A stretch of 63,627 nucleotides of DNA, the filler included, from Trichosphaerium sp. ATCC 40318 (Eukaryota > Protista > Tubulinea): assembly GCA_038496445.1 (NCBI GenBank). It is 3 parts of 3 records of this genome, joined end to end, with 100 filler letters (N's around TTAATTAATTAA, not from the genome) between each part and the next. Parts side by side here need not be neighbours in the genome. Positions count along the whole stretch, not along the records: positions 26,498 to 50,877 come from JALMLS010000205.1; 2 more parts are not named here. The stretch is one strand, 5' to 3'. The stretch's first letter is position 1; each line of letters starts with the position of its first letter. The notes under the pieces are model-generated. The model saw only the letters and a program-made list of their open reading frames with translations, was not told where the DNA came from and did no database searches. The translations under genes and the position numbers were made by a program. This document shows, in pieces, positions 27,969 through 49,040 of this stretch.

Positions 27969-29891
27969 TTATTCAACACTTAAAACACCATAGTCATACA
28001 CCACATCTTGTATTACCTGCCCTTCTTTTGTCCATGCAATAGCTCTTCCGTGTAATACATTACAATTCTTTTCAAATTTACGGTTCATCTGTCCATTTGT
28101 ATGCCAAGTAGTGACACTGACTGTTTGTCCATCATCACTATGTATTACTGATTTCTTTAGTTGTCCGCTCTCATACCACTTCCTGCAATCTCCTCGCGGT
28201 TTTCCTTCAACATAAGTTGAATGACTCTTTAGTTTACCATTCTCATGCCACTCTTTAAATTCCCCGTCCAGTTCACCATGTATAAAATTACACTCATTTT
28301 CTAATTGTCCATTTTTATACCAACACTTGTGCACTCCTTCACATGTATCATTGACAAAATTAAACTTTTCTTTCAATTGACTATTTTCATACCAAGAATT
28401 AAACTCTCCTTGTCGTATACCATCAATAAAATTCAGATTCCTAGCCATTGTACCATTTTTATGCCAAAAAGAACATTCTCCATGTTTTTTGTTGCTAACA
28501 AAAAAACATTTCTGCTCAAGTTGTCCGTTTTCATACCATGATAAATACTCTCCTTCTTGTTTCCCATTGATGTAATTACATTGTTTAGATATTTGTCCAT
28601 TTTCGTACCACCTCTTTACTAATCCTTCAGTCTCATGGTTTTCATTATAAAACTCAACACACTCTTGTCTTCCATTCGCATGGAAACTTTTGAAGAATCC
28701 ATTAGGTCTATTACAATGAACTCTAAGGTGACCATTCTCATCCCAACATTTCTTTTCACCACACTCCTTACTATCTTTCATCATCATTTCAAGCTTCTTA
28801 TTTCCATTCTCAAACCACTCTGTATGTAAACCGTTCATCAAATCGTTTTGTAGTGTACCGTGCCACCTGAGATTACCATTATCATGCCACTTCCACATTT
28901 CTCCTTCTGTCTTTCCATTCACAACATTAGACTTGATATGCATTTGACCGTTTCTAAACCATTGTAGTAGCTGCCCATTATCCACATCATCTGTTATGTT
29001 TATACTAAGTTTAATTTGTCCATTGTCATACCACTCTTCATGTAATCCGTTCTCTTTGTTGTCTTTATAATAACAACGTAATAGTAGTTTACCATTAGGG
29101 TGATACTTCAAACACTCACCTTGTGCTTCACCGTTCTTATAAAACGCTTCCAAGGAAACCTGACCACAATCATACCGTTTTATGATCTTTCCATGCTTCT
29201 TGCCGTTAACAAAGTGAGAGTGTTCAACAACCTGTCCGTTCTTAGTAAAATACTTGAACTCACCATGTCTGAGGTTATTGACAATAAAACACTGTTCCGC
29301 CAGTTCGCCAGTTTGGTAGTATGTCTTAACTTCTCCTGTAATTAATCCATCAACACAGTTTTGTTCTTTGACCAAGACTCCAGTATTATTGTTATAAACA
29401 AGAAGCGGTCCTTGTCTTATATTCTTTACAAACGTTGTATGAACACGAATAACATCTTGCTTCCATTCTTTCTTAACACCGTCCAATAAACCATCAACAA
29501 ACTGTTCCTCACTTATTGGTTTACCATATTTTGTCCACGTGCTAGTTGTTCCGTGTAATATACCATATTTATAAGCGCGCGAGCATGTTTTTACTCCATT
29601 TGTATCCCAAGTAATCAATTCTCCATGTAGTTTACCTTCGGCCATAGGTCGCTTTTCATGTAGAACACCATTTGGGTGCCACTCTTCGACTAATATTACT
29701 TGACCATTATCGAACGTTAATTGCTGCTTTTTGCCATCCTTACAGGTTTTAGACCATTTTCCGATCCTGTTTAAAGCGCTGTTGTAGTGTGTTGATGTGG
29801 CAGAGGTTTTACAGAGCAAATGCCATTTAAAAAATGCGTGTGGCGCTAAGGAACAGATATATTGTTGAATTTCGCGTGGTAGAGAAAGCAT
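27969..29891 (-). CDS. F-box-like + long MORN-variant (MORN_2/YwqK-like) repeat protein, intronless
   Basis: 640-aa single ORF: MLSLPREIQQYICSL followed by more than 20 repeats of ~24 aa of the type WYENGQLxxxxxYxNGKxEG. Confidence 0.92.
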   Translation of the reverse strand: MLSLPREIQQYICSLAPHAFFKWHLLCKTSATSTHYNSALNRIGKWSKTCKDGKKQQLTFDNGQVILVEEWHPNGVLHEKRPMAEGKLHGELITWDTNGVKTCSRAYKYGILHGTTSTWTKYGKPISEEQFVDGLLDGVKKEWKQDVIRVHTTFVKNIRQGPLLVYNNNTGVLVKEQNCVDGLITGEVKTYYQTGELAEQCFIVNNLRHGEFKYFTKNGQVVEHSHFVNGKKHGKIIKRYDCGQVSLEAFYKNGEAQGECLKYHPNGKLLLRCYYKDNKENGLHEEWYDNGQIKLSINITDDVDNGQLLQWFRNGQMHIKSNVVNGKTEGEMWKWHDNGNLRWHGTLQNDLMNGLHTEWFENGNKKLEMMMKDSKECGEKKCWDENGHLRVHCNRPNGFFKSFHANGRQECVEFYNENHETEGLVKRWYENGQISKQCNYINGKQEGEYLSWYENGQLEQKCFFVSNKKHGECSFWHKNGTMARNLNFIDGIRQGEFNSWYENSQLKEKFNFVNDTCEGVHKCWYKNGQLENECNFIHGELDGEFKEWHENGKLKSHSTYVEGKPRGDCRKWYESGQLKKSVIHSDDGQTVSVTTWHTNGQMNRKFEKNCNVLHGRAIAWTKEGQVIQDVVYDYGVLSVE

Positions 29892-30251: not shown

Positions 30252-30713
30252 TTACTTTTTGATTGTTGTTATGCAGATTCCATCAGCTTTGAAGTACTTG
30301 TACTCTCCATGTAGCTCTCCTTTATAGTACTTTGCCTCTATATTTATCTTACCATTGAACCGATATAACTTATAAAGACCTGAAGCGGTAAGCTTGGCGC
30401 AAAAAGAAAACTAAATTTCATGGGTAAAGCACTTGCCTTGTCTCTTATCCATTATGTAGTAACACTCCATTTTTTTAACTTTGCCTCCTGGGTACCACAT
30501 TGTGCAAGGCCCATGACGTTGTCCATTTAGAAACATACACTTATATTTTATGGTGTTTGTTTTGTAAAAACTCGTCCAAAGGCCATGTTTTTCCATTTTT
30601 TCGTTGAAGTAAAACGAAGCAGTGTGGCGGCATAAAACCCTGTAGTTTTTGTTTACAACGCTGTCTATACTGCAAATAATATGGTGAAGTTCAGGTGGTA
30701 GATCCAATAGCAT
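30252..30713 (-). CDS. Short F-box-like + MORN-variant repeat protein
   Basis: MLLDLPPELHHIICSID plus MORN repeats. A 57-nt GCAAGT...CAG intron (30380-30436) removes the in-frame stop and continues GLYKLYRFNGK..YYKGELHGEY to TAA at 30252. Confidence 0.8.
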
Positions 30714-35041: not shown

Positions 35042-35893
35042 TGATGCGACATATTTTTCCGTGCGCCGATCATTTTTTGTGCTTGTGTAGGAAACTTCAA
35101 GGTGATTTTTTTCTGACGCAATAAATAAACCCAATGTACTTTTACAAACATATTGTTGACGATTGTACGCCAATTAAATTTAAAGTTGAACTAGAAGTAA
35201 CAATAAGCCTTTTTTGAATACGAAACTCCGTCGGAGATGATGACGCTCGCGACACTTTCTATTTTACTCCCGACATAAACACCAATTACACTTTATTGTT
35301 TCAATTATGACTGAGATAATTGGAAATAGTACTGGAGCGAATATTACAGCCCTAGAAGATAATGGTGAGGGATTATCAAGTACTCAAGTAACAGTTCTTG
35401 ATACTCTTATCATCATACTTGCTATTACTTCAATGTTTGCTCAACTATTCATCATAACAAATTATGCTCTTTTCCCGCGATTACGCGGCGCTGTAGGTCG
35501 CTTAGTAGTCGCTATGGCCGCTAGTAATTTTTGTTTAGCGATTACTTTGGTACGCCAATACTTCTTATCACGTGACAACCTTTTTATGGATTCCTTTAGC
35601 TTGTTGGTTTACCCTCATTTAAAAACAGTATTCTTACTTCTGAACCACTTTGTACTGCGCAAGTAAGTGGCTTGTTCCGCGCAATCGCTTACAAAACTTC
35701 TAAATTATTGTAGGGAACCTTTAATCAATTTTTTTCGGTCCAAGGCGGAGTGTGGCCACCGTTTATTTCGATTGCACTTTATCTCTTTGTTACAAAGTAA
35801 GTAAGTTCCTTTATTTCGTTCTTCGAACTGATGGTTTTCAGAGGAAAAGAGGCGGGTGTCATGGCTTCAAACGTTCTGTTGGTAATAGGATAT

Positions 35894-38800
35894 CTCTGTC
35901 GACTGAATAGACTGTGATCTACTAATAAACTCTAAAATGCTTTAATAAATACTGCGAGAGTATGTTAAACAACATGTTGGAGTTAGAGCTTGTAACAAGC
36001 TGATTTTGTGTCTTTTTATTTTCTGTAATTGTATTTAGAAAACTCACATTTTTTCACTCATCAACTTCCTCGAACTGCTTCATAGTCACACTATCCATAT
36101 TTTATGACTGCTGAATATACACAAGGGCAGCTGATAGGTATGTACAAGTCATTAGGTTACTTAGAATCAAAAGTGTTGAAAAATACCGTGTAATACACAT
36201 TCTTTGCATCTCATAGTGTTTGAGAGTAGTTTTGAAACACGTGATACATTTTGTAGAGTTTACACTTCAAATCAAGTAAAAGTAGTCACAAACCGTGTTA
36301 TACGCACGTTTATTGCAGTTTGTGGTCACTTTGGCTGATAACAAAATCGTTTATCCTTTTTAGTATCACATGTATCAAAACTACTCGGAACTGTGTTGAA
36401 CACGTGTTTATTAAACGTTGTGGCCATTTTTAGCCAATTTTAAACTGCTTGTACTGTACTTACTGTTACTTAGCTAATTTACCCAAGTGGGATGCTCATA
36501 GTTGTCCGTGGGATGCTGTTTACATTGCGCTGTGCTCAGTTAATGAAGTTTGTGTATGTAAACATCAAATTATGTGCATTTGTTTTGCTTAGCACAAAGT
36601 TAGGTATTTCCACAACACCCAACTTTGTTAACGGACAACAATACTTCACAAAGTCGAAACAAACTCATAGCTCTCTTTGAAGAACACTGCTACTACACTA
36701 ATCCAAAACAGCAGACATATCTAGCAAAGCAGTTTAGTAAGCAGCGTAATGGGCAGTATGCTTTTGAATGCAGTGTAACAGAAGTACACAGATACGCTAG
36801 AAAAATGTGTACAGCATTTCATTTTATTGAGTGTTACGAAAATAAATGCTCATGTCAAGGTACAACACAATTACTTTTATGGTATTCACACATTTAAAGA
36901 CAGTTTCAAATCTCTGGAAAGGCTGTTCATTGATTATGGAGATTTAGAAGAGCGAATATCTACTTGGTTGAATCAAAGATTACAGTCAAACCATTGTACA
37001 GAATGTACTTCTGGTGGAATAAAAACTGCTATGGTAATTCTATGTCATTATCTACAACTTATCATTGATAGAGCATCACAATACCAGCGCTGATAACAGT
37101 GTGTCCTTCACCTACAGTGGTATCCAACTTTTTTGGGTTGCCTCAACAATTAATTCTACACGGAAGGTACATACAAACACAAGGCTGTGTGTTAATGAAA
37201 TTAGAGTGTGGAAAGCAACGTATTTATTAATGTGGCAAAAGAACCCAAAGCACTACACTACATATGTGAATGTAAATGGTATTTGGTGGTTCATTGACTG
37301 TTACCAACCAGAAAAATCTTGTCGCTCCAATCCTTGTAAGCCATTTTTCTACTACCTATGATTAACGCTTGAAAGGGGATAGCTCTGCATCACATGGCAC
37401 CAACCCTGATTTTTGGCGTGTTTGTGAGGTTGTTTATAAAGGAGAACCACATCAAGTATTTAACACAAAGCCTTACAAACCACCAACTCCGCCCTCCATC
37501 TATGAAAACTACAGCTCAAACAGTGTCAGGTATTGTGAATTACATTTTGTGGCAAATAGTTAACCTAAGTAGTGACGTTGTGTGTATTGAAGATAGTAGT
37601 GATGAATTTAGCCCATATGATGTACATCCAATTGATTCGAATGAATTCAGTGACGAAGATTCATGTAACATTTTAATGGTATCTAATTGTAAGCTACCTT
37701 CCGATAGAATATTGGCAAAGGATGACATTTTGGGTAAAACGGTAACAATACTTAAAGTAACAGACAAACGAACTATCACCAAGAAAGAAAAGAAAGTAGG
37801 ACAGCGAAAGTGGGTTGTAGAAGTAGAAATTAGTGTTGATGGTGAAAACAAACATTGTAGGCTATGGGACTGTGATGCAAAAACATTACAAGGATACAAG
37901 ACAGCAATTGCACACTGGAAAACACAAAAGTACATTACTGACGGGGTACTTTTCTACCAGTTAATGAAGGCACTAACTTGTTTAGAACTGGGAGCCTGGT
38001 ATAAATGCACCACATTTAAAGCATACATCTGCAGATAATGTGCTTGGTATTGATGAAGGAAAACAGTTTGCAATATGGAACCACAAAAAACCACCAACAG
38101 TTCAAGATGCAATAACAACATGGCTTTCACCTTTGTTTAACATGGTATTAGCGGACTCATCAATAGGTTTGACAGTTTGACAGCTTATGTAGTTTATTGC
38201 AATCAACTCACTCTTTTGTAGGGTTTAAAACGTTGGGTGCTGATTCCAAAAACATCTACAACAAGCTGAAAAAACAAGATATTTTGAAGCACAATTACAA
38301 AAAGCAACTTGAAGCGTTGAAACTGTATCCAGGTAAAGCCAATACCCTGTATTACATTAAATGGTTTATAGATATTAAAAACACATCTTGGTATCAAAAT
38401 ACAGTACCCAAGACAAAACAGCGGCTTGATAAAATAACCCAAAGCTGTGCTTCTGTTTCATATTCTACCTTGCTTTCTAAAATTGATATTCCGGGATACA
38501 TCAAAGCCAAAAAACAAAAAAATCACCATAAATGGACATGTGCCGGTAGTTGGTCAATAGATCTAGTTAGGTACTATTTTGGAGCGCTATTAGGAATGAA
38601 ACTAGCGCCACACCATAAGCTACCAAATTATTGGAAAAAGTTCTCATTATATGGAAATGAAGGTACAAATGAGTTCATTTTGTACATTATTTAGTTTGGT
38701 AGCCATTAAAAATAGTTGTACATTGGAGCAATGGGAAGAAATCACCTCTCAGATAGATTACCATCCCTTAAAAGTTCAACGGTATTGTAATTTGGTTTGA

Positions 38801-41053
38801 TATCTTCTGTGTATTTACAAAAATATTACAGGTTGCTGAATAGTGTTATACAACAGTCGTTTTTACCTGGAAGTATTGGTTGCCTAGATGAATCAGTACT
38901 ACCAGGAGCAAGTATGTCAACACTATCAAGGCATCATTTAAATGGCCATAGAGGTGTGGTTTAGATGTTATTGTTCACGCAAACCTGTAAAGGAAGGATT
39001 TTGGGTTTTTGAATTCTGTTTTAAAGTACGTTACCTCATAAAGCCTTTTTTAATGATTTAAAAAGAATGGTAAAGATGTTTGGCCATGGATGCTTGAAGT
39101 ACGATTTGGAGGAAGCACTTTGCCTCCGTCACACATGGCTCACTTTATTGCTACTACTATATTGAAGAAGTATCCCAACAATAAAATTACCATAGCAACT
39201 GATTCATACTACACTACACCAGCTATGGCAAAGCAAGCATCTAACAACTTTAAATTTGTTGGAGTTATGAATTCGACTAAAGCAGCGGACATGATTTCTC
39301 ACCTGAAAAAAGTACAAAAATTCCATGTCCACATCTAATTGATTGCTAGTTGCTACCCAACAAAAAGGTTGGAACACATGTGTGGGTATATGACGCCAAC
39401 ACATTGGAACAAGATTCTCCAGTCTGTGCTGGTATATTCAAAGATGTTAAATCTCATGTCTCTTATCTATCAAACATTGGAGATCCTACTAAATCTGTTT
39501 CTGTGACAGAAACTATCAAGTCAAAACAACAGGTGATACATAAGCCTGAACCCGTGAAGCTGTATTCAGAATTGAAAAATGCTTGTGATGTATTTAATAG
39601 ATTGTACGCATAAGTTGTAGTTATTAATACTGATTTTATACACAGTGTATTGAAGTACAGAAGGATTCATAATACCAAAAACACTCGGTGGACCACAGCA
39701 TTGTTGACAGCCTACTTGTAACATATTTTGTTAACACCACAGTTAATGTTGTTTAGTGATTTGTTTATGGCATCCTCTTTTTGTTGGTACACAATGCTCA
39801 ACAAACATAGCACAATAACATATGCAAAGTACATGGAAATGGTCGCAACTTCTTTAATGGAATCAAACCACAAACCCATATGTATTCGGCTGAGAAAACC
39901 CACAACTGCAAAAACTCCTAAACCTCAAGCTTACAATGATAGATGTTTACATACTCGGTCTAAAATGAAACCAATTTCAGACATCCAAAGCAATCAAATG
40001 AAATCACGCACAAGTGATCACATTCATCAAGCCAAACAATCAAACAAAAGAAAATTAGAAAAACAAAGTGGACGGGCAAAAAAACGTCAGCGAGTAGCAA
40101 AAACTCATAGTTTGCACTCAATTACAAAGTCTCGCTTTTCTGACAAGCTATTAAACTCACAAGTTGCCAAATGCAAGGTTTGCAATCAACGAAAAATAAG
40201 AAGGTACTATGCCGGCTATTTATTAACAGTATTCACCAAGATTAGGTATTGCAAAGGATGTATGATACAGCGTAAACTTGTTTGTGTGAAAAAAACTGTC
40301 TATTCTTTAAGAGTTCCAACGTTTTACTGTGTTGATTGCTTTCTAAACTACCACATGAACACTTCTTTCAACTACTGAATGGTACCTCTCTCTTTGGTCA
40401 TTTGGGATTGACATGGAATATCATATATCTTTTGGCTCTCACTGGGCTAGCTCCAGGCAGTGACCCAGATTATGGAGAAGACGACTTAGTATCAGGTAAG
40501 AAAAAGAGATTTAAAGAGAAAGCTAACAAGGCGTTCAAGGTTGACATTGATACCATATTGGCAATGAAATAGCATTCTGCCTTGTAGTATCTCTTAGAAC
40601 ATGCAGTGGATATTGCCTCCTACCAATGCAACAGTGGCACTGACACTGAATGCCATAACTGGTACAAGACGCTTTTACACCTCACTCTATGATATCTATC
40701 TAATGGTTGTCTTTTGCAATGCGAAATAATTGGTATTTTTAGGTAATTAACTAACAAAGACGGACTGAAAATGATGGCATTTTTTATTTTTTGTTTGTTT
40801 TACAAGATATTGATACCCTTTGTACATGGGTAACAATTTTGGAAAGTGTTTGGACACAGCAGCAATGTCCGAAAATAAACTTCCTCTTTCTGTGAACACA
40901 AAAAAAGGCTGCGGATGCTGCTCAAATTTGGGCAAAAAATTGTCCAAAATTCCGCCCGCTTGTACTCCTTGTGTGTAGTCGCTTGTGTGGGGGTAGTGGG
41001 TATATGTAAGAAATAACCAGCTACCTATTTGTGTTGTTATTCAGTCGATAGAG
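35894..41053 (+). mobile_element. piggyBac-superfamily DNA transposon, 5160 bp
   Basis: 16-bp TIRs CTCT(G/A)TCGACTGAATA (35894-35909; 41038-41053, one mismatch), flanked by ATAT on both sides (35890-35893; 41054-41057); encodes a piggyBac-type transposase. Confidence 0.93.
36104..40378 (+). CDS. USP-like cysteine protease / chromo-like / piggyBac transposase fusion, about 16 introns
   Basis: Cys box WDAHSCPWDAVYIAL (Cys 36503); His box KHYTTYVNVNGIWWFID (37251-37298); YFGALLGM..PNYWK; DDD triad CLDES (38887), TDSYYTT (39201), KNACD (39587); RKPVKEG; C-terminal CKVC..YCKGC..CVDCFLNYH. The checked introns joining the domains are phase-compatible. Confidence 0.85.
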
Positions 41054-42059
41054 ATATACTCTTGCAGCATTCAATACGGCTATACCTCTAATCTTAAAGG
41101 TATATGGAACAGCTGGACAATGGTGCGTTGTTTTTTAAGCATAGTATCATTTCATCTTCTAAAACGCAAAAGGTGTTGGATAAGTGGTGAGAAACTTGGT
41201 GGAAACTATAGAATGATATTCTACTACGCTCAAATATGGATTTTGTGGATTGTTTGTGTTACAATGTGAGCCTATAAATGTACTATAACGAAATGTTAAT
41301 TAATGTTTTTAGGTATGTGATGACATGGTCATTTTATCGGAATGTTGTTGTTACAACTGAACAAGGAACACATACTTTCAAAGTAAAGACAAAAGCTGTA
41401 CGTATATTCAGTTTCAGAATAGTGGAGACGTTCTAACCAATTATTCTAGATCAAAAAATTCATATACTATCCACTTGTGTTCATTATTATTTTTATTGGA
41501 CCCTCATTATTCCGAGTGTGGACACTCATTGAACCACATCCAGCGCAAACGCGATTATTTATATTAATACTATTCCATCATGTATGTTTCACTGGTATGG
41601 GTATCATAAATGCCGTCAGTACGTTCTGAATAGCAAAAAGACTGCAAAGAGCTTATTTGCTAATCTGCCTTTTTTTACTAGTTTACGGCATCAATGAGAG
41701 TGTGGTGAAGGAATGGAAAAAGATACTAGGAACACAACGTGAAAACTCTACTATTGTTCTAGAAGCTACCAAAGTAGAGGGAGCGGCGAGAACAGTATCA
41801 CAAATAGAAGATGAATCAAGTGAAGGTGGAACAAAGCGTAAAACTGGGGAATCATCTGAGAGCAAAGAAAGCAACTCAATAGCCTCTAGTATTTCAGATT
41901 CATCTTCTAGTAATAGCATAGGAATGTCTGACGCACTAACAGATACTTCTACGTCTGAATAAAATTGTACAAAAAATAAACAAAAAATATTTAATCTTGG
42001 TTTACGGACGAACATAAATACTTATTAAGATAATTCTTTGTCTTGTGTAAAAGCCTAAT

Positions 42060-43749: not shown

Positions 43750-44090
43750 CACAAGGATTAGGTTGGCTTACACATTATGAAGAGTTTCAGTTTGATTATC
43801 TTCTGGAACAATTTAAAGATTCATACAATCATGCTTTGTGACTCTCAGGTGAGCACAATCGCGATCTACAATGGCGAACATTTACGACTGTGGAATCAAA
43901 GCATTTACCAATGTCAAATACCTACATCTTGTTTGTTGCATGAGCATGACAACGGACTCAAGTTTGAAGACATTGGTTAGTCAACCTCGAACAACTTGAA
44001 CTGACTAGGTGTCCTATGAAACATGTTGTAGTATGTTGTTGTCCCCAGGTCACAGAAGGGGCTTTAAAGTCATTGGTATTAAATTTTATT
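43750..44090 (+). pseudogene. Possible degraded Cys-containing LRR gene fragment
   Basis: Frame-broken pieces NVKYLHLVCCMSMTTDSSLKTL and LEQLELTRC..CCPQVTEGALKSL resemble LRR_CC repeats. Confidence 0.3.
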
Positions 44091-44313
44091 GTACGAAAGA
44101 AAAACAACAATGCTGTTAAGTTTGACGCTTTAAGCTGCAGTCTTCACGTGATTAGAAGCTGTAACAACTCCTTCATGACATAAGGAATAGACACCATTAT
44201 TAATTTGCTTTTAACTGACCTTCGGCTGGATAAGTCCAAGACATTCTGACATTTATTGTCTGTTTGTTGAAATCTTGTCCCATCGTGGCTGTTAATGTTA
44301 ATTGATCACCACT

Positions 44314-47300
44314 ATGGATGACGAGTTGAACGAAGCTAAATCTAGGGTAATAGTAAACTAATTGGTTAGAAAGCCAATTTCGCTTATTTTGTCAGGGCCC
44401 TGCGAGCGCTAAAGCGAATACAATCAATCTTTCTGGGTTTAGAGCGCTGCAAAATGGTATAGTACAAATTTGTTAAAATAGAGCTTACCGCGCATAGATG
44501 AAGCTGTTGAATGCGCATCGACAAGTTCAATGGATTCTACGCAATCAATGCGTTTAGATTATACGAAGAACTCTTCGTACGCACCAATCGTCATTACTAC
44601 GCCCAAATAACTATTTTATTACATTAGAAGCGTATCTAAACGCCAGAAAAAATCAACAGTACGCAAACGCCAACTAACTGCCTCTTTTATCATTAACGTG
44701 AAGTAGTCTAAACTGAGACGTACTTACAGCGAAACTGAGAGAAAAATCAGGAGCAAACTCCGATCAAAGTAACTAAAACGTCACAAACGTCATAAAACTA
44801 ATCATTGTAGACACTCTACTACGCGTGGAACCTTTGTTGATGTTGACATAACACGCGTGGACAGAACAGAAGGCAACTCTTCAACATCTCCAAGATCGCC
44901 TCGATCACGTCTTTCTCCACGGTCTCCATCGTCTAGCAATGATTCTAAGGAATCAAAGAAATCTTTAAAACGAACACTTTCAAAAGCGCGATTGATGCGT
45001 CTCATACGCCCTACAGGCTCAACACGCAACCGTCAAGGTGATACTTAAAGTAGAAGTTGCTTGTTCTGACCTTTCAAAGCACGTGTAGAAAAAAAACTTC
45101 AGAGGACTCATATCATCGAAGAAATCATTGAAACGGAACGTAGCTATGTTAAATCTCTCCAAATAGTTCTCAAGTTATTCTATAAACCATTACAAACTTC
45201 TTCAAGCTCGGTACGCCTTCAGTAGTCTTAAAGTTAGTGAGTCTAACTAAATTCGCTGATCTTTATTCTTCCAAAAAAGGAAACCCCTCTTATGGCTGCT
45301 GATAAAGTTAAATATGTATTCTCTGAGCTTCATTCTATTTTGAAGCTCAACGTAGAATTCCTTGGTGATTTAGAAGTACAACTACAAAAAAAGAACGGAA
45401 CAATAGGTGATGCTTTTGAACGCTTTGTTAGAAAGGTATCAATTCACTTGTCATCATTTGTTTACTTTTTTTCAACACGTGGTTTCTGTGAAATATAACT
45501 TGTATTTAGGCAGCACATATGCGTGTATATTCACAGTATATAAACAAGTTTGATGAAATAGTTGATGTACTTAAACGCGAGGAATCAGCTAGCGAATCTT
45601 TTGCATTTTTTTTAAGAGTATGTTTTATTTATAAATATTCATGCTCCTCGAATAATATTATTAGAGAGCCAGTAAGCATCCTGATGCTGATTATAGAGAC
45701 ATATCAGATTTTTTAATAATGCCAGTTCAACGTATGTTGTGTTTTTTGTTGTACAACGTTAGACTCACAACGTCGTTCATAGGTATTCCACGGTATGAGA
45801 TGCTCTTAAAGGTATTAGCTTTATTCACTTTCATTCAAGTTGACATGTTCTTTAAAGGAATTGGTGAAGAGTACGCCTTCACATCATTCGGATAGATCTA
45901 GCCTTACCAATGCGCTTGCAATGATAAGTGCTACTGCTATGAGGATAAATCAGAACAAGAACGAAAATGTAAGTTCTATAGCCAATTGTCTGCTTTTGCT
46001 TAAAATTTTAGGTTGCATCTGAAAAAGTGATAAAGTTGCAACTCTTGATTGGAGATAAAATGAGTATTATTCAACCACACAGGCATAATGAGTTGTTTAA
46101 TGTTTAGATACTTATATTAGTCCTTTAGACGGCTTATATTACAAGCTGAAATTGTTGTACATACAGAAGTACCTTCGTGGAAAGTAAAACAAAGGCTTAC
46201 TTGCATATTTCTATTTAACGATGCATTAATGTTCACACAACGCAAAGGCATTAAAGACTCTAAAACAGGGATATCAAACAACCCATTAAACTCTTTAACG
46301 TGAGTATATAACATCAAGTTAAAAAGCAAAAAATCCATTAATTACCCAACTAACTCTCATTTGTTAAAGTGCGTTGGATGTTCTGGAATTCTTTCCTCTG
46401 ACAGAACTTTTCGATCTTACTATTTTACGGGATACGTTGGAAGGTATGATTCTTTGATACTACTTGTACCTGTATGCTGATCGATTTAGTTCCCTGTGGG
46501 CTACTACTGGGGTTTTTTGATGTTGAATTTCGATTGTTTTTTTCAAGCGAGAAACAAGTCATTCAATGGCGTGATAATATCTTAGACTGCTTAAATACCA
46601 ATGTTGTTCGTGCTAATATGTTCAATAAGAACAAGTACTATAGAGATAAGATACGTGAATACAAAGAGGAACAAGCTGCTGAAGCACGTGATGCTGCAAG
46701 AAAGTCAAAGGGAAGATTATCACGCCGTTTTTCGTAAGTCAACAAAACTAGCTTGAACTCAACAAACTAAAACAAACCTTTTAGCTTGAGCAGTTCTAAA
46801 AGTGAAAAGAAACGATCTCCATCTTCTCCACCTATTTCACCTACTCTACAACTGAAGCGTAGAAACCAATCTAGTACGTTATCTCGACCTTCTTTCGATG
46901 CCTTACCGCCACCTTCTAGCGGCAGCGGGACATAGTATAAGTGGATGGAAATTACCAAATCTAAAGGACTTAATACAAGCTGATACTGCTCTTGGCGAGT
47001 GCTTAACAGCAAGTTACGAAGCTGCAGGAAATGCTATATTATACTGGTCAACAATTAACAGTATACCATGTACTATGGTGCAGAAGAAGATAACACCAAG
47101 AAAGCGCATTGCCAAGAACCTTCCAATGCTTAAACGATCTCAGACTTTTGAACCATCTACAACACCTCCTCGCTCAAACAAGAAAAAGAGGATTAGTTTT
47201 ACAAAGAATATAGGCTCTCTTACTAGGAGTAAGTCAATGGAGCCTTTTAGGTCCCTTTGGGGACCAAAGGAAAGAAGTACTAGTAAAGGTACAGCAAATA

Positions 47301-47455
47301 AGAAAAAACAAGGATCACAGTCAGCAAGACTATCAACTCTCAAGTATTCTTCACCACTTCCTTTAATTAAGGAAAAGAAGAAGGAAAACGACTTGAGCAA
47401 TATTCACGATGAGCACATGCTTTCACGAAAGTACTACTTCAGTAAACAGGTATGA
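44314..47455 (+). CDS. Dbl-family RhoGEF (DH-PH)
   Basis: RTHIIEEIIETERSYVKSL, FLIMPVQRIPRYEMLLKELVKSTP, PH-like LHIFLFNDAL, Ser/Arg/Pro-rich flanks. The 3' end is uncertain (possible stop near 46935). Confidence 0.88.
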
Positions 47456-47821: not shown

Positions 47822-49040
47822 ATGGCACGAACAAAGATAACACGGAGAGGGCAAACCAAACTACCAACTAAATCATCTGGAGATAACACAACTAAAAGAT
47901 CTCTATCAACTCTTGATTGTACTTCAGCGAGCCTTTCAGCGGCGCCAGAAGCTGTGTGGATAGCTTTATTTTGCAAGTGTAGTACAATAACACTTGCCAG
48001 ACTTGTATGCGTCAATAAAACGTTTAAACGTATTTTACACACGCATGAGGATCTTTCTGAAGAGATGTTTACATATTTCAAAATATTTCAAATATTTCAA
48101 ATATTGCAAATGTTTTAAATGTTGCGAAATTGTTGAAAAACCTGCCAAACTTTTTGTCAGTCGGTTGTTAAAAGTTACGCTAAACACCTGAAAAGCGTTC
48201 TACGGTAGTTTGGTCGCGCTTTTCTGTTTTGTTTCAAGTGTTACATTTATTTCATAATATTTGGTATATTTGTAATATTTGAAATATTTGTAACCAGAAA
48301 ACATCTCTTGAGAGTATTAGTAGAGGTTCGTTGTTTAAACAAGTACTGGAAGCCCTAAAACCATAAAACTAGGAACCTCTGGTACTGTGTTTTCCTGGCA
48401 GTTCATCATTAACGTAATGAATGAGGTTGAGGAAGCGCCAGAACAGACTTTTTTCAAAACAACCGACAATAAGCCTCAACCGTGGCTAAACAATGAATCA
48501 ATCAAGGATAAATATCCTAACCTACTCTCCAAGTACATGTTATTGATTCAAAATGCAGGAAATGACACGTGGGAAGTAAAGAAAGGTTCCCAAATGAACA
48601 ACCCTCCAAAACCGGGAGACAGTCCCAGTGACGTTATATGGCCTTGCATTCAAAATAGAAAGCCTTGGAAGCGAGCGTTGACAATTCATTGGGTATCTAA
48701 CAGTGGACATAACTTGTATATGTCACTTTGTGATCATGAAGGTGCACTTGGTTTTAACACAAAAAAAAAAGATGGAATTGTTATTGGGCTAGCAAATGGT
48801 TTACCTTATGTGTACAGCAGTGATGTATGCTATATTAATGGAAGTGGGTGTATGCGGCTTTGGAATAGTATAGATTTTTGCTATGATAAGATGCCTACTG
48901 TTAAAGATGCATTATCTGAGTTTGAAAGAAGTATTTTGAGATTCTTTTCTAATGATAACGGTCCATTACCATGTGATAAGATGCTCTCCAAGCACCTATT
49001 AAAAGAAATAAAGATAAAGAAAGGTGATAAACTGGCTTAG
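47822..49040 (+). pseudogene. F-box protein interrupted by a MITE in exon 1 (this allele)
   Basis: APEAVWIALFCKCSTITLARLVCVNKTFKRIL. Removing 48061-48308 plus one TGA gives DLSESISR, then a phase-1 intron into GTSGTVFSWQF (ORF 48387-49040). Confidence 0.7.
48061..48308. mobile_element. MITE, 248 bp (PIF/Harbinger-like by TSD)
   Basis: 10-bp TIR AGAGATGTTT/AAACATCTCT, 3-bp TSD TGA (48058-48060; 48309-48311), mirrored subterminal AAATATTTC-type repeats, no coding capacity. Confidence 0.85.

Follow-up and report, generated by a model that had tools for sequence, protein, structure and literature searches.

A divergent piggyBac-superfamily transposon from Trichosphaerium sp. ATCC 40318 with a predicted protease-transposase fusion

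We analysed a 63,627-nucleotide stretch of DNA (the window, along which all positions are counted) from Trichosphaerium sp. ATCC 40318, and studied its part 26498-50877, from record JALMLS010000205.1, to which all part-wide counts refer. A 5,160-bp piggyBac-type element spans 35894-41053 of this part. Taking all the evidence together, we consider it probable that this is an autonomous, recently inserted DNA transposon of the piggyBac superfamily, from a divergent and intron-rich protist lineage that targets ATAT, and that it encodes one protein in which a ubiquitin-specific protease (USP)-like domain precedes the transposase. An earlier note on this DNA had proposed such a fusion; the ATAT target-site duplication (TSD), the restoration of a host reading frame when the element is removed, a motif resembling a SUMO-interacting motif (SIM) and a weak chromo-like domain go beyond it.

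Element ends and the interrupted host gene

The inverted repeat at 35884-35909 and 41038-41063 splits at each end into ATAT and a 16-bp terminal inverted repeat (TIR), and the two TIRs, which the earlier note had described as intact, are identical at 15 of 16 positions with a single mismatch. Elements of the piggyBac-like type have TIRs of 12-19 bp that start with C[CAT][CAT][TGA][TAG][TGA], duplicate a 4-bp AT-rich target, and measure 1.7-8.5 kb (PMC5381638); the TIRs here, with their CTCTGT and CTCTAT starts, have both a fitting length and a fitting sequence. No further TIR copy is present in the part at up to four mismatches, and a single copy of the element is visible there.

The canonical TTAA duplication is absent and the TSD is ATAT, a rare recorded site among piggyBac-like elements (PMC5381638); TTAA was considered as the target site and dropped, as none lies at the element ends. 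This rules out a canonical TTAA piggyBac-like element and not membership of the superfamily. Deleting 35894-41053 together with one ATAT joins a hydrophobic host exon in frame, and both halves of the host gene are intact, so ATAT is the genuine duplicated target and the element inserted recently. With its intact ends, perfect TSD and a host exon split without loss to either half, the element has the features of a mobile rather than a domesticated transposon. Pfam searches with single exons of the interrupted GPCR-like gene gave no match.

Predicted gene and the two halves of its protein

Within the element a single gene is predicted (Table 1), and the earlier proposal of one spliced frame from ATG 36104 holds as a prediction: the frame is free of stops to 40378, gives 1,087 amino acids (aa), and a single gene is the best parse. 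The three introns named there as joining the frame (37530-37572, 37946-37985 and 38167-38221; 43, 40 and 55 nt) are GT-AG introns that keep phase. That list was incomplete, leaving out 14 others including 37336-37375, which is equally critical to the fusion.

The protease motifs quoted in the earlier note are all present and in the order given. Cys22, His216 and Asp231 stand in the canonical register of USPs (clan CA) with the Cys box first, two Cys pairs lie within the domain at aa 115-120 and aa 156-159, and His216 is followed by an aromatic residue, Tyr217. An aromatic residue in this position is a gatekeeper enriched in proteases that cleave after Gly-Gly, including USPL1 (PMC7391069). A Ulp1/CE-clan identity was dropped because the Cys precedes the His. 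For comparison we assembled a profile of 34 divergent natural USPs, fetched by DNA motif and chosen by the Cys box alone; members of the profile match Pfam UCH, and one also Peptidase_C98. The USP profiles, taken from environmental giant-virus contigs, served for scoring alone. Against the divergent profile the domain gives glocal z-scores of 4.5-5.9, which drop to 3.0-4.6 when the Cys motif is masked, and the three stretches of the protein taken as controls reach at most 2.1. A hidden Markov model (HMM) of the divergent USPs finds the Cys and His boxes in order, the latter in the gap-free register H-x10-W-x3-D. ESM Atlas features of the His exon lead to UCH (PF00443) clusters and to unnamed basidiomycete clusters with lead-level scores of 0.88-0.90, and all ten of the best ten family matches agree on UCH (recognition 2370). 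It is very likely, judging from these profile and feature comparisons, that the N-terminal domain has a USP-like fold. In environmental giant viruses (IMG/VR contigs L127-L176), USPs of a divergent family that has Asp at Cys+3 are widespread.

A Pro/Ser/acidic linker follows the protease and holds two features that we treat as leads only. One is the SIM-like motif; SIMs are often present in SUMO proteases (PMC12687455), and the position of this one beside the protease, at a chance rate of 9% among shuffled proteins, is the sole hint toward SUMO. The other is the small chromo-like domain, for which AF2 in single-sequence mode predicts four strands and a helix (pLDDT 61), a topology in keeping with the three-strand sheet and C-terminal helix of chromodomains. 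Chromodomain proteins are enriched among its structural matches (VIA), making up about 14 of the best 50, with Z of 3.5-4.5. Pfam, Foldseek and ESM Atlas gave this domain no support, and an aromatic cage for methyl-lysine is not evident by eye.

The second half of the protein bears out the earlier assignment to a piggyBac-type transposase with a DDD triad and a Cys-rich tail. Single exons match PF13843 (DDE_Tnp_1_7) weakly but at colinear model positions (E of 0.061, 0.11 and 0.0075). Residues 585-932 align end to end with L177, a decayed canonical piggyBac fossil that was fetched by motif, is read with X at its breaks, and matches the piggyBat transposase 9c0f (E 5.6e-8). The alignment has a z of 6.1 (0 of 500 shuffles score as well) and places D672, D750 and D866 on the three catalytic Asp residues; an N-terminal control gives z -0.6. 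Global alignment alone found this fossil, which a local three-sequence HMM missed. L177 (CBDATR010000041.1, an archaeal metagenome-assembled genome, MAG) and L178 (a Rubritalea MAG) are both decayed eukaryote-type piggyBac sequences in prokaryotic bins, most likely through host contamination.

A sensitive search with one exon returned two relatives from JGI metagenomes, L001 (3300044453) and L002 (3300044452), whose spliced products keep the triad and share with the element protein 39% identity across 297 aa (E 2e-63) in one case and 42% across 113 aa (E 3e-29) in the other. Their introns, read by eye, lie at positions equivalent to 38663, 38782, 38912, 39026, 39312, 39604 and about 40204, and L002 runs continuously across 39718-39756, so that the last eight introns are supported by L001 and L002. 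These shared intron positions and the identity validate the transposase half. L002 also has the Cys-rich domain. Both are further members of this divergent, intron-rich piggyBac clade; L002 carries additional introns, and the spacing of its Cys-rich tail differs. Word-index homolog searches with the His exon were blank, the D3 alignment returned L001 and L002 only, and scans for the locus on contigs from metagenomes, viruses and genomes were blank as well. By these sequence criteria the transposase is a divergent member of the piggyBac superfamily and not a canonical TTAA element. Exon 10 carries, at 38224-38560, about 100 basic, probably helical residues inserted in the transposase's N-terminal part, which canonical piggyBac lacks; a word-index homolog search with it was blank and its predicted fold was unusable (pLDDT 40).

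Introns were scored with a splice model trained on introns of host genes and homolog-confirmed introns, in which true introns reach 8.4-20.6 bits (median 15.3) and the decoy 95th percentile is 12.9. Immediately after the Cys box, an alternative pair of introns (36554-36592 and 36604-36653) flanks an 11-nt micro-exon (36593-36603); the gene parser favours this version, which yields 1,074 aa, and both versions are in frame. A start at ATG 37394 was dropped because that frame scores as non-coding, as were an acceptor at 37382 (8.1 against 12.5 bits) and a second, minus-strand gene at the element's 3' end, where no coding signal was found. The long first intron forms a hairpin (folding z -2.9) and contains a 24-nt inverted repeat (36224-36247 and 36363-36386) and a 42-nt direct repeat; it may be a miniature inverted-repeat transposable element (MITE)-like insertion, or a regulatory fold-back that could give double-stranded RNA. 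Right after the transposase stop and still within the element, at 40414-40572 (+), lies a frame that is hydrophobic, then acidic, then basic, and scores as coding (log-likelihood ratio, LLR, +10 across 90 nt). Its donor at 40496 is strong; neither an ATG nor a splice in phase joins it to anything defensible.

Table 1. Positions of the element, the predicted gene and its features along the window
Feature	Position	Strand	Remarks
Host gene, 5' half	35307-35889	+	Part of the gene that the element interrupts in a coding exon; multi-transmembrane, G-protein-coupled receptor (GPCR)-like by eye
Left TSD, ATAT	35890-35893	.	Empty-site reconstruction gives back host reading frame
Left TIR, 16 bp	35894-35909	+	First bases CTCTGT; fits piggyBac terminal consensus (PMC5381638)
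Predicted single spliced gene	36104-40378	+	18 exons, 17 introns, 1,087 aa; ATG 36104 to TGA 40378, no internal stop
Introns 1-6	36138-36473, 36554-36603, 36860-36899, 37034-37071, 37167-37204, 37336-37375	+	GT-AG
Introns 7-12	37530-37572, 37946-37985, 38167-38221, 38663-38702, 38782-38831, 38912-38951	+	GT-AG
Introns 13-17	39026-39065, 39312-39349, 39604-39645, 39718-39756, 40204-40245	+	GT-AG
First intron	36138-36473	+	336 nt against 38-55 nt for the remainder; splice score 19.9, above all 181 decoys
Predicted USP-like cysteine protease domain, exons 2-7, aa ~12-267	36474-37450	+	Profile score, triad register
Cys22	36503-36505	+	Catalytic-Cys position, Cys box
His216	37251-37253	+	Aromatic Tyr217 next
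Asp231	37296-37298	+	His-box register H-x10-W-x3-D
SIM-like motif, aa 297-306	37577-37606	+	VVCI and acidic/serine run; pattern match, found in 9% of shuffled proteins
Chromo-like domain, aa ~349-415	37733-37933	+	Small beta-sheet and helix; weak
Divergent piggyBac transposase core	37986-39860	+	D672 (38887-38889), D750 (39201-39203), D866 (39587-39589)
C-terminal Cys-rich domain, aa 1034-1080	40172-40354	+	Three CxxC pairs and terminal His; basic stretch like a nuclear localization signal before it; common to L002
Right TIR, 16 bp	41038-41053	-	Starts CTCTAT
Right TSD, ATAT	41054-41057	.	Perfect copy of left TSD
Host gene, 3' half	41058-41962	+	Remainder of the interrupted gene; intact

Alternative readings and genomic surroundings

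A number of findings weigh against a single protein that joins a USP-like protease to the transposase, and some of them bear on how the gene is spliced. Two of the four junction introns, 37336-37375 and 37530-37572, have middling splice scores of 12.5 and 12.3 bits, which 7% of decoys reach (37946-37985 and 38167-38221 score 16.3 and 17.0). If 37336-37375 is retained, the protease closes with a plausible final strand, aromatic and with a slightly better USP profile score, and donor 37930 outscores 37946 (20.0 against 16.3 bits) and leads to stops, so that the protein would end after the chromo-like domain. These observations, and a 214-aa open reading frame (ORF) at 37394-38038 with ATGs of its own, speak for a real protease whose main form is separate from the transposase or shorter, either a stand-alone protease ending at 37361 or 37563 or a protease-SIM-chromo protein ending just past donor 37930; it would act in trans as an accessory protein, as in Crypton or Mutator elements, and the transposase would start at ATG 37502 or 37677 or come from a minor splice. 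We regard this as unlikely. Exon 37376-37529 is coding in a frame without an ATG (LLR +15.8 against -6.1) and must therefore be spliced from upstream, and the open alternative frame across it is expected 76% of the time; exon 37986-38166 must also be spliced, because an in-frame stop lies ahead of it. Neither an intergenic gap nor a polyadenylation signal was found, AATAAA being absent between 37018 and 38356. Under a coding model, the modelled frame comes out best for each exon between the Cys box and the transposase, both included, with changes of frame solely at 38-55-nt introns. The gene parser, a dynamic-programming procedure that is blind to protein motifs, finds the four junction introns whatever its settings. 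Forcing it to separate the protease from the transposase costs 11-43 bits, comparable to the 6-56 bits for breaks within the homolog-confirmed core; the parser is imperfect, making one wrong split at 39707. A single fused protease-transposase is the likely predicted product, possibly with shorter splice products alongside.

Other unfavourable findings concern the identity and history of the N-terminal region. Searches of Pfam and NCBIfam with single protease exons (26-85 aa) gave no match at any threshold, and so no direct match to PF00443, PF13423 or PF15499, and PDB sequence searches with them stayed at noise level. The Cys-box and helical exons were uninformative in ESM Atlas, where the scores of the His exon are themselves at lead level. 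Against a set of 103 natural canonical USPs (fetched by DNA motif, Pfam UCH) the glocal z is 2-3, falling to 1-2 with the selected His motif masked. Moreover, a Trp at Cys-5 and a Cys after Asp231 stand in place of the usual oxyanion residues of the retrieved USPs. The region could accordingly be coding yet belong to a papain-like enzyme of another kind, a domain that binds Zn or a catalytically dead remnant, its boxes being a chance resemblance aided by free choice of introns. We think this improbable, given that the motif-blind parser picks identical introns, that two independent methods (Atlas features and the USP profile) indicate UCH, and that the whole Cys-His-Asp triad is there together with the gatekeeper aromatic, with a Cys-to-His distance of 194 at the edge of the 194-277 of the retrieved family. 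There is likewise little probability that this copy alone captured a host USP-like fragment, carried along as a passenger that plays no part in transposition. The searches turned up no relative that includes the N-terminal half, the 1.1-kb contigs of L001 and L002 being too short to reach it, and only one copy is visible; against a one-off capture, the protease exons match the transposase exons in GC content at third codon positions (0.25-0.42) and intron size (38-50 nt), lack frameshifts and stops, and are distant from canonical USPs, a combination that fits long residence under selection.

The surrounding part is compact eukaryotic DNA with 36% GC and introns mostly of 38-75 nt, and this make-up, with its RhoGEF, MORN-variant and GPCR-like genes, suggests an amoeboid protist. 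CACGTG is its most over-represented hexamer (19 observed against 3.9 expected), often in introns and intergenic DNA. Two intronless MORN_2-repeat genes, at 27969-29891 (-; 640 aa, Pfam E 2e-56) and 30411-30713 (-; 100 aa), lie amid this intron-rich genome and share by eye an F-box-like N-terminus, and another weak F-box ORF is at 47822-48118. A host RhoGEF gene at about 43800-46737 (+), with at least 10 short introns, served in training the splice model. The 185-aa ORF at 46898-47455 (+) has no Pfam match; its first motif, which we take to resemble the end of the SWIM zinc finger of Mutator transposases, is followed by a basic tail, and the ORF is possibly a decayed transposon.

Proposed function and comparison with known systems

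In piggyBac transposases the DDD and Cys-rich domains perform TIR binding and cut-and-paste. On the fusion reading, one spliced mRNA would give one protein of about 1,080 aa with a USP-fold cysteine isopeptidase, a SIM-like linker, a chromo-like module, a DDD transposase and a Cys-rich tail. The transposase half would bind the TIRs, excise the element and insert it at ATAT; the ends and triad are seen in the sequence, and the chemistry is that of known piggyBac. The protease half, to judge from its triad register and His-aromatic gatekeeper, would cleave behind the terminal Gly-Gly of a ubiquitin-family modifier. We infer that it may take SUMO or ubiquitin off the transposase itself, or off chromatin and repair proteins at donor and target sites, and so shield the complex from degradation or silencing; since the protease is tethered to the transposase, its action would most likely be local. 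SUMO and ubiquitin/NEDD8 appear to be equally good candidate substrates, each close to an even chance, with only a small share left for another modifier or a dead enzyme. A more ambitious proposal, which we offer as speculative and rather unlikely, is that the element represents an undescribed clade of intron-rich, ATAT-targeting protist piggyBacs with a three-part chromatin counter-defence module, in which a chromo-like reader and a SUMO-binding motif accompany a USP-fold SUMO isopeptidase. Such a module would settle on silent chromatin that bears SUMO and remove this mark in cis, and a mobile element would here have evolved or captured a USPL1-like deSUMOylase independently.

Ubiquitin and SUMO proteases have been acquired repeatedly by unrelated transposons (Ginger1, Mutator, Crypton and Helentron), and authors have so far proposed repair signalling or protection of transposition proteins as their role. 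The VTD domains of Helentrons, for instance, are active deubiquitinases for which a protective role was suggested (PMC9741609). The piggyBac transposase is among the best studied in eukaryotes and has simple excision and integration assays, so that a natural piggyBac whose transposase chain also bears an intact protease would open two points to direct study: whether a Cys22-to-Ala change lowers transposition, and what modifier the protease takes off. With its ATAT target and strong divergence the element also widens the known diversity of piggyBac, and intron-dense protist elements slip past annotation based on ORFs and Pfam, as here.

The element resembles piggyBac-like elements such as T. 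ni piggyBac and piggyBat (PF13843) in TIR length and start, 4-bp AT-rich TSD, DDD triad, Cys-rich tail and size. It differs from them in its ATAT target, its 17 introns, PF13843 matches that stay below cut-off on single exons, an N-terminal extension of about 420 aa (protease, SIM-like and chromo-like) and the core insert of about 100 aa. Repbase probably includes an ATAT-targeting piggyBac group. The protease shares with USPL1 (C98), CYLD and divergent giant-virus USPs an Asp at Cys+3, the His-aromatic motif and H-x10-W-x3-D, its likeness to USPL1 and CYLD themselves being presumed rather than drawn from a sequence comparison. USPL1 is a SUMO-cleaving relative of USPs (PMC7391069).

The earlier note, which knew of Ulp1 and OTU proteases in other transposon groups and of no USP-fold piggyBac, implied more novelty than there is. 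Several cases of such proteases are known: OTU and Ulp1 domains occur on Ginger1 and Mutator transposases (PMC2836005) and C48 in Cryptons (PMC3212892), and these elements, like the present one, are TIR transposons with an intron-containing transposase fused to a ubiquitin or SUMO protease. Their proteases, however, are of the OTU type or CE clan and are C-terminal or in a separate ORF, whereas the one here is USP-like and N-terminal. A USP/C19 domain on a transposon is also already known. Helentrons (HLE2) with UCH, OTU or VTD domains stably carry a USP (UCH) domain (PMC11417382), although they are rolling-circle elements with RepHel and not cut-and-paste DDD elements, and Trichomonas vaginalis XP_001314237.1 combines a DDE-type transposase and peptidase C19 in one protein (PMC2836005), its transposase being pfam01609 and not piggyBac (the comparison is by description, not sequence). 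A survey of piggyBac-like elements nowhere mentions a protease or peptidase (PMC5381638), and no report of a piggyBac carrying a ubiquitin or SUMO protease was found in the literature searched, a search that excluded Repbase and subscription papers. What may be new is thus the piggyBac carrier, the N-terminal position of the protease, and the SIM- and chromo-like linker between the two halves.

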